Below are positions 17,812-23,371 of a stretch of 64,000 nucleotides of DNA, in pieces. The stretch covers positions 868,001 through 932,000 of the forward strand of contig NC_000964.3 in NCBI RefSeq assembly GCF_000009045.1, given 5' to 3'. This DNA is from Bacillus subtilis subsp. subtilis str. 168 (lineage in GTDB: Bacteria; Bacillota; Bacilli; Bacillales; Bacillaceae). A program made the translations under genes and the position numbers. Under the pieces are notes generated by a model, which was given only the letters and a program-made list of their open reading frames with translations, made no database searches and was not told the origin of the DNA. The stretch's first letter is position 1, and each line of letters starts with the position of its first letter.

Positions 17812-17842
17812 AAAATGGCCCGCTTCATAAGCAGGCCATTTT
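17812..17842. terminator. Bidirectional terminator sspH/yfjF
   Basis: AAAATGGCC/GGCCATTTT stem. Confidence 0.8.
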
Positions 17843-17843
17843 G

Positions 17844-18173
17844 TTATCCGCGCGGCGCAAATAAAATAACACAGACACCGATGAGACAAATGAATGCGCC
17901 GATCCAGTCATACAGATCAGGTGTTTTCCGGTCAACAAGCCATCCCCACAGGACCGCAAGCACGATGAATACTCCGCCATAAGCGGCGTATACACGGCCG
18001 AAAGATGGGAAGGACTGAAACGTCGGAAGAATGCCGTATACAATGAGGATCAGCGCCCCGGCGATTCCGTAGCCAGCTGGCTTTGCCTCTCTCAGCCATA
18101 GCCAAACCAGATATCCGCCGCCAATTTCAGCAAGCCCTGCCGCGAGAAATAAAAGAATGGTAATCAGCATCAT
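17844..18173 (-). CDS. yfjF: UPF0060 (YnfA/SMR-like) small membrane protein
   Basis: 109 aa, four TM helices, AEIGGGY and [11 protein letters not shown] motifs. Confidence 0.9.
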
Positions 18174-18222
18174 GAGCACTCCTCAATTTGCATTTATCTT
18201 TCATTATAGAGGAGGAGAGCTT

Positions 18223-18765
18223 TTAAAGCTTCGGATGATTCTCAAATTCCTTCAAATACGCTTTTCGCTGAACCTCTGTAAATTGGCTGATCCAATTGTT
18301 TTGAGCCTCTTCATTCAAATGGGGAAGGATATAGCGTTCAACCGCTTCGAAAAACAGCGGATTCGTGATGATGTTCCAGGTCGGGATTCGAACGATTTTG
18401 CCGTCTGTTTTCTCGATGATAATATCCTCAAAAAAGATCCCTTTCAAACTGTATTGATGGCGTCCCATATAAAGCCGCTTCACCTCGGAAAACAGCACGC
18501 TGCGCTTTCTCAAGAAGATTTCGCCACTAGGTCCGGTCTTTATGGTGAAAATGACATTTCCACGGCTTGTGAACGCAGGAAAAGCCATAAAGAATGTGAT
18601 CAATCCATAAATCATCGCCAGTAATCCGCCGCCCAAATAAAGCAGGGCATATTTAGATTCAAACGTGAGGGCTTCAGACACCAGCCAGACTCCCACAATA
18701 AAGGCGCCCCCTGTAGCGAGGAACAGCCAAGCCCTTAGAAACATCATGCTTTTTACTTCAATCAT
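18223..18765 (-). CDS. yfjE: Two-TM membrane protein, paralogue of YfjD (candidate immunity protein)
   Basis: 180 aa; near-identical C-terminus to YfjD (IRIPTWNII.NPLFFEAVERYILPHLNEEA...EFENHPKL). Confidence 0.85.
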   Translation of the reverse strand: MIEVKSMMFLRAWLFLATGGAFIVGVWLVSEALTFESKYALLYLGGGLLAMIYGLITFFMAFPAFTSRGNVIFTIKTGPSGEIFLRKRSVLFSEVKRLYMGRHQYSLKGIFFEDIIIEKTDGKIVRIPTWNIITNPLFFEAVERYILPHLNEEAQNNWISQFTEVQRKAYLKEFENHPKL

Positions 18766-18774
18766 GTGCTGCCC

Positions 18775-19332
18775 CTAAAGCTTCGGATGATTCTCAAATT
18801 CCTTCAAATACGCACTGCGTTGGATGTCTGTAAACTGTCCGATCCAATTGCTTTTCGCCTCTTCATTCAGATGTGGAAGGATATAGCGTTCAACCGCTTC
18901 GAAAAACAACGGATTCGGAATGATGTTCCAAGTGGGAATGCGAATGGTCTTCTGATCCACGGTTTGGATCAATATATCTTCTTGGAAGATTCCTTTTAGA
19001 CTAAATTTATGGCGGCTCATCTCAATTTTCTTGATATCAGTAAACGTAACAGACACTTTGTCAGTGAACACTTCTCCATTTTTTCCTGTCTTGATGCGGA
19101 AAATGGTATTTCCCCGCGGGGTGAAAGCCGGAAAGAAGATGATAAATAAATATAAACAAAACAAGGTGAACAGAAAGCCAGCAGGAATGGCTAATAGGTA
19201 ATATTTCGTTTGAAACGTAATACCCATATAAAAGAGCCACAAACATGCTAATCCCATACCGGCAGATCCGACAAAAGCCCATATTCTCAGGAACATTTTG
19301 CTTTTGACTTCAATGATTTCTTGGTTTTTCAA
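18775..19332 (-). CDS. yfjD: Two-TM membrane protein (candidate immunity protein)
   Basis: 185 aa, TTG start, RBS AAGGAG, two N-terminal TM helices plus soluble domain. Confidence 0.85.
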   Translation of the reverse strand: MKNQEIIEVKSKMFLRIWAFVGSAGMGLACLWLFYMGITFQTKYYLLAIPAGFLFTLFCLYLFIIFFPAFTPRGNTIFRIKTGKNGEVFTDKVSVTFTDIKKIEMSRHKFSLKGIFQEDILIQTVDQKTIRIPTWNIIPNPLFFEAVERYILPHLNEEAKSNWIGQFTDIQRSAYLKEFENHPKL

Positions 19333-19363
19333 TGCTTTTCTCCTTTTGTTAATTCAATTCTTA

Positions 19364-20131
19364 TCATTTTGAAATGATTTGATTTACAACATCCTTATGA
19401 GCAGGGAGGATAGAAAATTCATTCTGGGTGATGCCTGTGACAAGCCAAGTATGGTGGGCCCCCGGCAGGACGAATGCCATGTCAGCCACTTCAGGAGTGT
19501 TATCTTTTCCATATGCCAGACGCATAAGTGTATCCATTTTCCCTTTCCGCAAAGCCAGATCATTTGCAAATCGGGTAACGTCCTCTTGGTGGTCATGTTT
19601 TTCAAGGAACTCTTTTAGATATGAAGGGTTGTCTGAAGCGCCCTCCAAGAGTTTTTCAAATTCATTTGATGTCAATGTTACAATCGATTCTCTTTTATCC
19701 TCTGTATCTATTATATGTAAAAACTCATCTGTCTTAGCAAGTAACCCTTCACTTGATTCCATTTTTGTAATGCGATGGACTTGTTCATCAAAAAGGAGTT
19801 CGTGAGAGTAGGTGCCGAATTTTGATACATGGCATGACACATTCTGTTCGGCACCTTGCCCGTTAAATTTAGAAAGCTTCACTGTATAGTCAGCGTCGTT
19901 TAATACATGGATAAACGGACAGTACTCGTCCTTTAACCGATATTGATGGTTCCGATATTCCGCTGCATCCTTGGCTAAGAGTGAGCGGCACGCGGCTTCA
20001 AATAAGGCGCCGAGCTGTTCATCTTCTATTTCCGGAAAATAGGCCTGCTTCAAGGCCATTCCCTGTTCAAAAAACCCTTCGCTGTAAAAGCAAAACAAGA
20101 GTTCTTCTATGCTAATTGTAAACTGCTTCAT
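19364..20131 (-). CDS. yfjC: Soluble acidic hypothetical protein in a WXG100 locus
   Basis: 255 aa, RBS GGAGAG, co-oriented with yfjB and yfjD with short spacers. Confidence 0.85.
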   Translation of the reverse strand: MKQFTISIEELLFCFYSEGFFEQGMALKQAYFPEIEDEQLGALFEAACRSLLAKDAAEYRNHQYRLKDEYCPFIHVLNDADYTVKLSKFNGQGAEQNVSCHVSKFGTYSHELLFDEQVHRITKMESSEGLLAKTDEFLHIIDTEDKRESIVTLTSNEFEKLLEGASDNPSYLKEFLEKHDHQEDVTRFANDLALRKGKMDTLMRLAYGKDNTPEVADMAFVLPGAHHTWLVTGITQNEFSILPAHKDVVNQIISK

Positions 20132-20142
20132 TGTTTATTCTC

Positions 20143-21366
20143 CTATCCAAATGAAAATTTCCCTTTAAGGAAATGGGTTGCGCCGTGTATAAGCGAATCC
20201 GCTGTTTTCTTTGCTTTTTCCATTCCTTTTTTCGCGCTGTCTATCCCTTTATGTATCGATTTATTCGCCGCATCTATGCCGTCATTCACTGATTTGACGA
20301 CTTTGCCGGCTGATTCCAGCCCTTTTTTGGCTGTATCAACAACAGCATGGATCGGTTCTTTCAGCTTTAAGGCTGCTTTTTCAGCAAAACCGGCTGTATA
20401 TTTGGCGATTTGTTCTCCGACGACTCCGCCAATGTATGAACCTGCTGCCCCAAGAAGGACAGTACCCACAGGTCCTGCAAAGCTTCCGATTGCACCGCCG
20501 ATGACAGCACCAGCTGTGGCACCGCCGGCAACAAAAATCGTATTATTCACAGCATTCCCGACGGCCTTGGCGTTTTCACGCTTGAGAACTTCCGGTTTAT
20601 CCTGGTATTTTGCATAATTTTCAGCAATTTTCACGCCTGCTCCGAATGTTTCGGTCGCTCCGGTAATCAGTGTGGCGGTAATGGCATTTCCTTTCGCGAA
20701 TCTCAAGCCCGTTTTTCCCACATCCTTCAAAGTGGAGCGTACGCCGGCTTCATTAAGAAATCCTTTTGTGTAGCTTCTGACGCTGTTTGAAAAATCCACC
20801 GTGTCCTGAGGAAAGTATTTTGTAAACTTTTTATGTACCAAATCTGAAAATGGACGGTTTGTCTTTTTCAACAAATATTTAGGATTCAAAAGCACTCTTG
20901 CCGCTTTTTGATAACGTGAGCTGTCAACGGCCCTGGAAATATCCAAGAGCAGTTTTGAGTGCTGGGCTGTATGCAAGCCGCTTGGTTGTTTCACAAATTT
21001 CGTAAGCCCTAATCCGTAATATTTTCCCTGCGTCAGCATAAGAGCGGTTAAGCTTGTCATCGTACCGTATTTGTCGTAGGCATTGTAGAGCTTTCGCAAA
21101 ATATCATCTTGTTCCACAAATTTATCGCCTGTTTTTCTGATGAAAATCTCATTGTCACTCAGCTTAGTGACGAGCGCCTTTCCTGAGCTCCACGCATCGC
21201 CCACTCCAGAAAAACAGCTGCTGTAGCGGGGATCGCATTGCAAAATCATCTGCCCCAGCTCCACATGCAGGTCCTTATATTTGTTTTCCATATCAGTTAA
21301 TTCAGTGACTACATCATTTGCAAGCTGTTCGAGCTTATCCGGATCAACTGCAATGTTTCCTGACAC
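20143..21366 (-). CDS. yfjB: WXG100/LXG-like N-terminus plus glycine-zipper C-terminal region; candidate T7SSb effector
   Basis: GTG at 21366 after GGAGGT; IAVDPDKLEQLA start, DAWSSG, Gly/Ala hydrophobic hairpin AGGATAGAVIGGAIGSFAGPVGTVLLGAAGSYIGGVVG. Confidence 0.8.
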   Translation of the reverse strand: MSGNIAVDPDKLEQLANDVVTELTDMENKYKDLHVELGQMILQCDPRYSSCFSGVGDAWSSGKALVTKLSDNEIFIRKTGDKFVEQDDILRKLYNAYDKYGTMTSLTALMLTQGKYYGLGLTKFVKQPSGLHTAQHSKLLLDISRAVDSSRYQKAARVLLNPKYLLKKTNRPFSDLVHKKFTKYFPQDTVDFSNSVRSYTKGFLNEAGVRSTLKDVGKTGLRFAKGNAITATLITGATETFGAGVKIAENYAKYQDKPEVLKRENAKAVGNAVNNTIFVAGGATAGAVIGGAIGSFAGPVGTVLLGAAGSYIGGVVGEQIAKYTAGFAEKAALKLKEPIHAVVDTAKKGLESAGKVVKSVNDGIDAANKSIHKGIDSAKKGMEKAKKTADSLIHGATHFLKGKFSFG

Positions 21367-21371
21367 ACCGT

Positions 21372-21686
21372 TCACCTCCCGAGTTTATGTCTTTCCTCTC
21401 TTGCTTTACGCTCCAGTTCTTCCATTCTGGCAATTTCAGCTTTTCGTTCTTCTATTTTGACAGCGGCAGCCTTCAGCTCTTGGCTTGTTTCAAGCAGCTC
21501 CTGTTCGAATTGATCGTAGGCGGCTTTCGTTTCCTCGAAATCCTGGTCAAACGAATCTCTTGCTTTGCCCTGCCAAGCATCTCCCAATGCAGATAACCGG
21601 GATTCAAGCAGCATTTTGGAGCTTCTGACCTCTTCTGCGGCCGCACTATACTTGTTTGCCAGCTCAATGACTTTATATGAGTCCAA
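21372..21686 (-). CDS. yfjA: WXG100-family protein
   Basis: 104 aa from TTG at 21686 (RBS AGGGG); central W-Q-G motif (DAWQGKA) between two helical halves. Confidence 0.88.
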   Translation of the reverse strand: MDSYKVIELANKYSAAAEEVRSSKMLLESRLSALGDAWQGKARDSFDQDFEETKAAYDQFEQELLETSQELKAAAVKIEERKAEIARMEELERKAREERHKLGR

Positions 21687-21940
21687 CTTTTGTCCCCTGC
21701 CTTTTCTAAATTCACGCACAATTGGATGTTTTATATAAATGATTATAAATAATTCGGCATGTATCCGAATCGTACAAAAGAACCTTTTCATAAGAATTGG
21801 AAGGGCGTATATTCACTTAAAATTCACAGTTGGTGAGACTTTAAGATTACAAAAAAGGTAAAAAAACCAAATCTCTCAGACATAAGGCAAATGAGAAATT
21901 TCCCGCTCTATGGGAAAAAACACTAAAGTTGATCAAATGA

Positions 21941-23371
<1,431 letters not shown>

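Follow-up and report, generated by a model that had tools for sequence, protein, structure and literature searches.

The yfj operon lies within a 64,000-nucleotide stretch of the Bacillus subtilis subsp. subtilis str. 168 chromosome (NC_000964.3, positions 868,001 to 932,000; hereafter the window, in whose coordinates all positions are given), and its genes, yfjABCDEF, very probably constitute a contact-dependent membrane toxin operon served by the type VIIb branch (T7SSb) of the type VII secretion systems (T7SS). That the operon works as a T7SS toxin/antitoxin system is already known and is not new. The only part going beyond the literature found concerns two variants of its glycine zipper and the second of its two immunity-type genes. 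Variation in the zipper of the toxin, YfjB, covaries with the adjacent immunity gene, as in polymorphic toxin-immunity systems. We would give even chances to the proposal that YFJ is a polymorphic inter-species weapon with two ancient co-adapted variants, in which yfjE is an orphan immunity gene against the other, E-type, toxin of sister species.

Kobayashi devoted a 2023 preprint to the operon in B. subtilis NCIB 3610 (bioRxiv 10.1101/2023.08.02.551746), and a review of the same year restates its findings, including the similarity of YfjC to EspG (PMC10765036), so that the module can no longer be called uncharacterised, as it was in the first-pass annotation made from the sequence of the window. 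The preprint reports DegSU-dependent induction of the operon and, on overexpression of YfjB and YfjC together but of neither alone, propidium iodide uptake in more than 10% of cells; the joint product was named YFJ toxin. Mutants of yfjA and yfjC no longer outcompete an operon deletion, YfjA being dispensable for toxicity and required in competition, and competition further requires the yukE T7SS operon together with exopolysaccharide and TasA. Loss of yfjD leads to self-killing, which deletion of yfjC prevents, and YfjD is accordingly taken to be the antitoxin. Deletion of yfjE or yfjF had no phenotype, the yfjE tests having been isogenic (bioRxiv 10.1101/2023.08.02.551746). Toxicity and a competition phenotype are accordingly both on record, and of the two genes yfjD and yfjE, whose joint dispensability the annotation had envisaged as telling against its reading, only yfjE can be lost silently. 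The author's proposal is that the toxin acts mainly as a biofilm signal dampening DegSU. Earlier work had counted YfjA as the second B. subtilis member of the WXG100 family (PMC3701619), and the YfjB of the window shows 100% identity with the representative of the B. subtilis cluster. Neither a later paper on the YFJ system nor a peer-reviewed form of the preprint turned up in our literature search. Whether YFJ serves as weapon or as signal was left open in the preprint, and the comparative data sharpen the question.

In subtilis-group species with a single gene for a DUF5381 protein, the family of both YfjD and YfjE, that gene is either YfjD-like or YfjE-like. YfjB was compared by type of immunity gene, using an alignment from 12 related subtilis-group loci. 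Those whose first or only immunity gene is D-type (the window, Bacillus sp. N13C7, B. halotolerans and B. atrophaeus) share one common zipper sequence, and those with E-type genes only (B. inaquosorum, two B. spizizenii, B. tequilensis, B. stercoris, B. mexicanus, B. rugosus and B. mojavensis) share another of their own. All nine YfjB sites that fully separate D from E loci fall within residues 293-325. Between the window and B. stercoris 17 of 57 residues differ in the segment 276-332 as against four of 349 elsewhere (Fisher p 1.3e-12), and the pairing of the sister species B. halotolerans (D) and B. mojavensis (E) gives 15 of 57 against eight of 342 (p 7e-9). At the DNA level, identity between the window and B. 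stercoris runs at 95-99% through yfjA and the 5' part of yfjB, drops to 64% in the zipper (20500-20401), returns to 99-100% in the tail of yfjB and falls again to 72-85% in the 3' two-thirds of yfjC, after which comes the alternative immunity gene. Most of the YfjC sites that separate D-type from E-type loci are held by its C-terminal 50 residues.

The immunity genes follow the same division, with a D clade that includes YfjD (support 100/100) and an E clade (98/96) in which YfjE of the window clusters with the proteins of the eight E-type loci, each having one DUF5381 gene only, and with that of the second gene of B. halotolerans; the latter species has the same D-then-E order of immunity genes as the window. 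The genotype of the window is accordingly a D-type toxin with its cognate YfjD, plus an E-type YfjE. Synonymous divergence (dS) amounts to 1.2-2.3 for the zipper and 0.6-1.3 for yfjC codons 86-255, in contrast to 0.13-0.31 for yfjA and the remaining yfjB codons and 0.27-0.40 for yfjF, placing the zipper roughly 4- to 10-fold above yfjA or the remainder of its own gene. Positive selection on the zipper was considered and rejected, since the ratio of nonsynonymous to synonymous divergence (dN/dS) there is 0.08-0.17; high dS with low dN/dS points instead to old alleles moved by recombination and not to recent fast evolution.

On the proposal of an inter-species weapon each variant would be a set of three, made up of a zipper hairpin, a YfjC C-terminal part and a DUF5381 immunity gene that move by recombination among subtilis-group species, and the proposed sources of E-type toxin include B. 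spizizenii, B. inaquosorum, B. stercoris, B. tequilensis and B. mojavensis. If it is correct, the specificity contact lies between the toxin hairpin and the membrane segments of the immunity protein, and the small set of natural residue differences between D and E should define how a DUF5381 protein recognizes a glycine-zipper toxin inside the membrane. An orphan role for yfjE in genomes of the 168/3610 type would also explain why its deletion is silent in isogenic tests, and the variant hairpin of the relatives with its matching immunity gene offers a cheap and concrete test of yfjE function.

Turning to the proteins themselves, YfjA is a WXG100 protein by every test applied. It scores 47.5 bits against Pfam WXG100 PF06013 (cut-off 27.3) and 52.2 bits against NCBIfam TIGR03930 (cut-off 44.85), and its residues 8-87 match solved structures of the EsxA/EsxB type (3gvm, 3o9o, 2vs0 and 4j42; E 2e-6 to 6e-3), so that the short protein with a central W-Q-G singled out by the annotation belongs to the family above curated cut-offs. 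It is presumed to be the secretion partner of YfjB.

The glycine-zipper region that had been noticed in YfjB was found as a two-helix GxxxG hairpin at residues 279-326, with glycines at 282, 286, 290, 294 and 298, then P299, then glycines at 309, 313 and 317, and a hydropathy peak of 1.7 (residues 287-305) lies within it. The zipper glycines and P299 are invariant across 41 YfjB relatives in the family alignment, in which the conserved positions are G286, G290, G291, P299, G301, G309, G313 and G317. The match of YfjB to Gly-zipper_Omp (18.7 bits) is below the cut-off of 25, and no family is assigned to the protein above threshold; matches to Gly-zipper_Omp at E<0.1 occur in all 41 relatives (best 4.7e-7). 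Among PDB sequences the hairpin best matches a stretch rich in glycine within a phage tape measure protein (9ki1 chain g; E 2.6e-5 from the sequence alone and 1.7e-8 from the family profile), a likeness more probably due to the composition common to membrane hairpins than to shared ancestry.

At the other end of YfjB the annotation had seen a 'WXG/LXG-like' N-terminus, of which the first half survives in weakened form and the second does not. Below-threshold matches to WXG100 occur in 23 of the 41 relatives (best E 3.3e-4), the family profile aligns weakly with B. anthracis EsxB over positions 3-88 (E ~0.03), and the structure model superposes locally on EsxB with a Foldseek probability of 1.0, a target-normalized template modelling score (TM) of ~0.7 and a root mean square deviation (rmsd) of 2.4-3.9, at a non-significant E >0.3. 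Weakly, then, sequence profile and model together suggest that the N-terminal 90-100 residues are WXG100-like. Matching to LXG (PF04740) gave nothing at E up to 1, nor is LXG among the 25 most frequent of the 32 families matched by the 41 relatives at E up to 0.1, and the candidacy of YfjB as an LXG toxin was rejected on both grounds; its predicted distinctness from the nuclease-type LXG toxins holds. One database source labels one YfjB relative 'LXG domain-containing', a label that could not be reproduced here. A fold for the whole protein was also rejected, the confidence score of the model (pLDDT, predicted local distance difference test) being 60 and no PDB match falling below E 0.3, and an apparent likeness to the alpha-pore-forming toxins AhlB and SmhB is meaningless (probability <0.1, rmsd >40).

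YfjC had been described as soluble and unknown. Soluble it appears to be, no hydrophobic segment being found in a hydropathy scan, and no sequence match was obtained to Pfam ESX-1_EspG (PF14011), to any other family in the Pfam and NCBIfam copies searched, or, with a profile search included, to the PDB. Its structure model is of high confidence (pLDDT 90.7, predicted TM 0.85), and the best 18 Foldseek matches in the PDB are all mycobacterial EspG1, EspG3 or EspG5 (E 4.5e-9 to 3.7e-5, TM 0.50-0.69), with a clear gap to the next match at E 0.07. On this model YfjC has the fold of EspG-type T7SS chaperones, which together with its need for toxicity in the preprint removes it from the category of unknowns. 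A YfjC profile run against 1.84 billion representative proteins recovered 145 relatives only, the named ones all from Bacillales. A distant one in Brevibacillus fulvus sits inside a T7SS cluster (locus L064, 4465-12828), flanked on one side by the gene of a 398-residue protein with an EspC/WXG100-like N-terminus (PF10824 27.5 bits, cut-off 23.5) and on the other by genes for EspG-like and YukD-like proteins and an FtsK/SpoIIIE ATPase. The YfjC relatives of Tumebacillus and Aneurinibacillus migulanus are preceded by a gene whose product has weak WXG100-like and glycine-zipper matches. The B. fulvus cluster also has genes with weak matches to von Willebrand A and PP2C phosphatase. Among precomputed Pfam families, PF27282 and PF27351, neither of them part of the Pfam copy searched, are listed for relatives of YfjC.

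That yfjD and yfjE are tandem paralogues encoding proteins with two membrane segments each is borne out. Their products are 61% identical (BLASTP E 2e-78), match PF17353 at 253.3 and 207.5 bits respectively (cut-off 26; relatives in the most distant loci reach 84-105 bits) and have two hydrophobic segments apiece at a Kyte-Doolittle threshold of >=1.6, those of YfjD at 20-38 and 44-73. The similarity is unevenly spread, with the membrane segments 37% and the last 60 residues 83% identical. As to the annotation's 'duplicated immunity genes', the antitoxin role of YfjD in the preprint bears this out for the first of the pair and the silent deletion does not for the second. The lipoprotein processing suggested for YfjD in the preprint was set aside: the cysteine is present in some relatives and missing from YfjE and many others, so such processing is not a feature of the family, and two membrane segments make the simpler reading. 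A PH-like fold for the soluble C-terminal domain found no firm support either (bPH_2 at E 0.19 in one of 19 members, a PH model at E 0.075 in one of 19), and the DUF5381 profile found nothing in the PDB.

The module has a wider range than the preprint's 'rarely found in other species' (bioRxiv 10.1101/2023.08.02.551746). YfjB relatives are present in 61 species-representative genomes, from the subtilis and pumilus groups through Metabacillus, Peribacillus, Cytobacillus, Neobacillus, Mesobacillus and Fictibacillus to Aneurinibacillus and Paenibacillus. In a census by iterated profile searches over all open reading frames (ORFs) of the 61 loci, WXG100, YfjB, YfjC and DUF5381 genes are co-oriented in 58, the exceptions being two short contigs and Mesobacillus zeae without yfjC; it is because the same order recurs in so many that the arrangement is not ascribed to chance. 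A WXG100 gene precedes the toxin gene in 59 of the loci, and in 59 a YfjC-like gene stands beside the two. DUF5381 genes number one in 38 loci, two in 11, three in six, four in four and seven in one.

Some individual loci depart from the pattern. M. zeae (L053, 6001-9390), the only full-length locus without a chaperone gene, has the toxin gene followed by three full and one truncated DUF5381 genes and no yfjC-like gene. In Bacillus sp. FJAT-47783 (L040, 9397-11746) a second cassette lies downstream of the main module and is toxin-less, consisting of a yfjB-like 3' remnant (tail only, interrupted by a stop ahead of the zipper) together with two DUF5381 genes and a yfjC-like gene that is intact; it is comparable to the orphan modules known from other polymorphic toxin loci. 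In B. halotolerans ATCC 25096 (L005, 7215-7999) yfjC is split into two overlapping frames, the first of 137 amino acids, in what is a frameshift or a sequencing error, other B. halotolerans entries having an intact YfjC of 261 amino acids.

How might the parts work together? YfjA would pair with the WXG100-like N-terminal hairpin of YfjB in a helical bundle recognized by the Yuk/Yue machine, while YfjC, by its EspG-type fold, would bind YfjB in the producer and keep it both export-competent and active. Following export into a touching neighbour the zipper hairpin (279-326) would insert, oligomerize and damage the permeability barrier, presumably by forming a pore. YfjD neutralizes the toxin, probably through helix-helix contact with the zipper in the membrane, as the covariation suggests, and YfjE would do likewise for the E-type toxins of sister species. 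In its broad outline, a T7SSb effector module of WXG100 partner, membrane-active zipper toxin and membrane immunity protein, the scheme of the annotation is supported by family membership, fold, synteny and the genetics of the preprint.

Several considerations weigh against this scheme. That YfjB itself is exported is something we infer, and T7SS dependence is genetic, from one preprint with no peer-reviewed form found. The toxin is weak, giving ~10% dead cells on overexpression, the mutant falls to ~20% in competition, and the operon is nearly invariant within B. subtilis (bioRxiv 10.1101/2023.08.02.551746), the last being the ground on which Kobayashi prefers signalling. As YfjB lacks toxicity on its own, YfjC may have a role beyond that of a chaperone, and alongside the low confidence of the YfjB model the WXG100 similarity of its N-terminus is never significant. 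The association of zipper and immunity types comes from 12 related loci and may partly reflect linkage rather than co-adaptation. YfjA was recovered equally from the medium of wild type and yukBA mutants and was judged not to be a YukBA substrate (PMC4010439).

This last result leaves the dependence on the T7SS, for which the annotation had looked to secretion in wild type and mutants, with evidence on both sides: competition needs the yukE operon, and YfjA reaches the medium regardless of yukBA. If the link were indirect, YfjA and YfjB would leave by another route or by lysis, with the yukE operon needed for susceptibility or expression only. Equal amounts of YfjA in the medium of all strains, secretion mutants included, accord with such a view (PMC4010439), as does suppression of the self-killing of the yfjD mutant by deletion of the yukE operon, for which a possible receptor-like role was noted by the author (bioRxiv 10.1101/2023.08.02.551746). 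Yet WXG100 partners, like those with the EspG fold, are found in type VII systems only, a family member stands beside T7SS core genes in B. fulvus, and the growth conditions of the proteomic study leave both the DegSU-dependent operon and the T7SS weakly active (PMC3701619, PMC4010439); an indirect link seems highly improbable. The view that YFJ is mainly a kin-to-kin signal, dampening DegSU in YfjD+ neighbours and delaying sporulation in rich biofilms with toxicity a side effect, is of another order, though still rather unlikely. Operon deletion raises DegSU-regulated expression and speeds sporulation, wild-type cells lower bslA expression in a co-cultured mutant in a dose-dependent manner, the toxin is weakly active and the operon hardly varies among 13 B. 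subtilis strains (bioRxiv 10.1101/2023.08.02.551746). The recipients in the signalling assay, however, were cells without immunity (bioRxiv 10.1101/2023.08.02.551746), and across species the system has the marks of a polymorphic weapon: two zipper variants, deeply diverged and each linked to its matching immunity gene, immunity-type arrays of up to seven copies and an orphan cassette in one locus. It is this cross-species polymorphism that argues for antagonism having shaped the locus, and the weapon and signal readings are compatible.

Two further alternatives concern single components. Might YfjE have no function of its own, being merely a copy of YfjD that is redundant or in decay? Its deletion is without effect on colony form, bslA expression or competition, and it is missing from many B. 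subtilis strains (bioRxiv 10.1101/2023.08.02.551746) and from locus L001. It has a long terminal branch (0.096) and a dN/dS about twice that of other E-type genes, its N-terminus is five residues shorter than in its orthologues of E-type species, the late start arising because the yfjD stop lies 9 nt upstream, and it carries 11 substitutions seen in no other E-type protein. The shorter start and private substitutions suggest mildly relaxed constraint. Against redundancy, YfjE is no recent copy of YfjD, since it groups with the immunity proteins of eight sister species that have one such gene each, its dN/dS of 0.10-0.23 shows it to be still under purifying selection, its membrane segments are one residue away from those of cognate E-type proteins, B. 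halotolerans retains the D-then-E order, and isogenic tests such as those of the preprint are unable to reveal protection against another toxin variant. We consider redundancy doubtful. The other alternative makes YfjB and YfjC a two-component toxin in which YfjC is part of the active complex or is delivered cargo, and not a producer-side chaperone. The two are toxic only together (bioRxiv 10.1101/2023.08.02.551746), and both the concentration of D/E-separating sites in the C-terminal 50 residues of YfjC and the zipper-like high dS of its residues 86-255 would fit. YfjC lacks a hydrophobic segment, though, and M. zeae has the toxin with three to four immunity genes and no yfjC; moreover the EspG fold is confidently predicted. 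The EspG proteins of ESX systems are cytoplasmic chaperones and are not secreted. A two-component toxin strikes us as quite improbable.

By analogy, YFJ resembles TspA, EsxX and TelE in function, and the PE-PPE-EspG and EsaD-EsaE systems in architecture. For the purpose of comparing YfjB, CdzC is grouped with TspA, TelE and EsxX in what we take to be one functional class of glycine-zipper membrane toxins. With the Kobayashi system there is identity of locus, and its gene order, YfjC-EspG similarity and glycine zipper were independently reproduced here; the additions are the two zipper/immunity variants and the reading of yfjE as an orphan (bioRxiv 10.1101/2023.08.02.551746). TspA/TsaI of Staphylococcus aureus (PMC7456083) and EsxX with ExiAB/ExiCD (PMC12258717), compared with YFJ by architecture and function, are likewise T7SSb toxins with helical N-terminal targeting and a membrane-depolarizing C-terminal part, which in EsxX is a glycine zipper as in YfjB (PMC12258717), and their immunity factors are membrane proteins that also occur in arrays, like the DUF5381 genes, or as orphans (PMC7456083, PMC12258717). 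They differ in carrying LXG domains, for which YfjB has no match, and in having polytopic immunity proteins of other families (PMC7456083, PMC12258717); the soluble producer-side zipper binder of EsxX neutralizes its toxin, whereas YfjC is needed for toxicity (PMC12258717). TelE/TipE of Streptococcus gallolyticus shares with YFJ the T7SSb, a C-terminal glycine zipper needed for loss of membrane integrity and an adjacent immunity gene; TelE, though, is an LXG protein and TipE a small DUF5085 protein, in contrast to the non-LXG YfjB and the two-segment DUF5381 proteins, and that locus has no described EspG-like gene corresponding to yfjC (PMC10434224).

The mycobacterial PE-PPE-EspG systems of ESX and EsaD-EsaE of S. 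aureus have the same layout of small helical partner, longer helical substrate and globular chaperone of EspG fold. The YfjC model aligns with EspG3 at TM 0.68, without detectable sequence similarity to EspG (identity 11-14%, no Pfam EspG match); unlike PE-PPE-EspG, YFJ is of type VIIb, belongs to Bacillota and has an antibacterial membrane toxin as cargo. Contact-dependent inhibition (CDI), Rhs and the esaG and tipC arrays (PMC9484751) also tie a variable toxic segment to its immunity gene and include orphan immunity genes, and they share with YFJ tandem immunity paralogues whose homology blocks permit gain and loss by recombination. YFJ departs from these systems in having only two variants in the subtilis group and in the nature of the variable part, a short internal membrane hairpin instead of a whole C-terminal domain, the C-terminal tail of YfjB being conserved.

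The limits of the operon were drawn from ORF calls and direct reading of the DNA (Table 1). The five tightly spaced and co-oriented minus-strand genes at 18223-21686 that had been reported are there, the spacings from yfjA to yfjE being 5, 11, 31 and 9 nt, and the ribosome binding site (RBS) of yfjB lies within the 3' end of yfjA; a mechanical ORF for yfjB from 21375 would alternatively give 410 amino acids. Translational coupling, along with this gene layout, counts in favour of the operon reading. A sixth gene, yfjF, had been left out. It follows yfjE by 49 nt, and as the single strong terminator lies 3' of yfjF, before a convergent small spore-protein gene, the transcription unit is of six genes and not five. 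The sixth probably belongs to the transcript and not to the toxin module, membership having been rejected because yfjF adjoins the module in subtilis-group loci only.

Table 1. Features of the yfj locus in window coordinates
Feature	Position	Strand	Description
yfjA	21372..21686	-	104 aa; TTG start after AGGGGA; WXG100 protein, W38-Q39-G40
yfjB	20143..21366	-	407 aa, all-helical toxin; GTG start after RBS GGGAGGTGA
YfjB residues ~1-100	21067..21366	-	possible WXG100-like helix-turn-helix hairpin, W-x-x-G turn (GDAWSSG); weak evidence
YfjB residues 279-326	20389..20532	-	glycine-zipper hairpin, allotype-determining segment, D-type in window
yfjC	19364..20131	-	255 aa, soluble, predicted EspG-like chaperone fold
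yfjD	18775..19332	-	185 aa, DUF5381 membrane protein, D-type, cognate immunity protein
yfjE	18223..18765	-	180 aa, DUF5381 membrane protein, E-type, proposed orphan immunity gene
yfjF	17844..18173	-	UPF0060/YnfA membrane protein, PF02694 170.8 bits; last gene of transcript
Direct repeat copy 1 (3' end of yfjE)	18224..18399		176 nt; copy 2 (3' end of yfjD) at 18776-18951
Intrinsic terminator	17812..17842	-	14-bp stem, 6 G-C pairs, then T run
Intergenic region upstream of yfjA	21687..22021	-	presumed operon promoter region; divergent 6-phospho-alpha-glucosidase gene on other side

No consensus sigma-70 site stands out upstream, promoter-like matches between 17500 and 22100 numbering 7 against 7.8 expected, and an Rfam scan of the whole window returned no RNA family. 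Origin from a mobile element was rejected, the flanks being 93-98% identical and syntenic with sister species and the G+C content (0.40-0.50) ordinary for the genome. The two copies of the direct repeat at the ends of yfjE and yfjD are 86% identical and 552 nt apart. The repeat is likely a substrate for recombinational loss or gain of either gene, and the deletion end points in loci without yfjE (L001) or without yfjD (L007, L003) fall at these paralogous blocks. On the plus strand, ORFs at 18157-18624 and 18766-18999, antisense to yfjE and yfjD and with similar N-termini, mirror the paralogous repeat and are without support as genes. Finally, Metabacillus and Mesobacillus have, between the WXG100 and toxin genes, an ORF of 63-69 amino acids (L028, 5658-5849; L053, 5761-5970) that is absent from the window and matches no family; its product has a basic N-terminus and a hydrophobic C-terminal tail.

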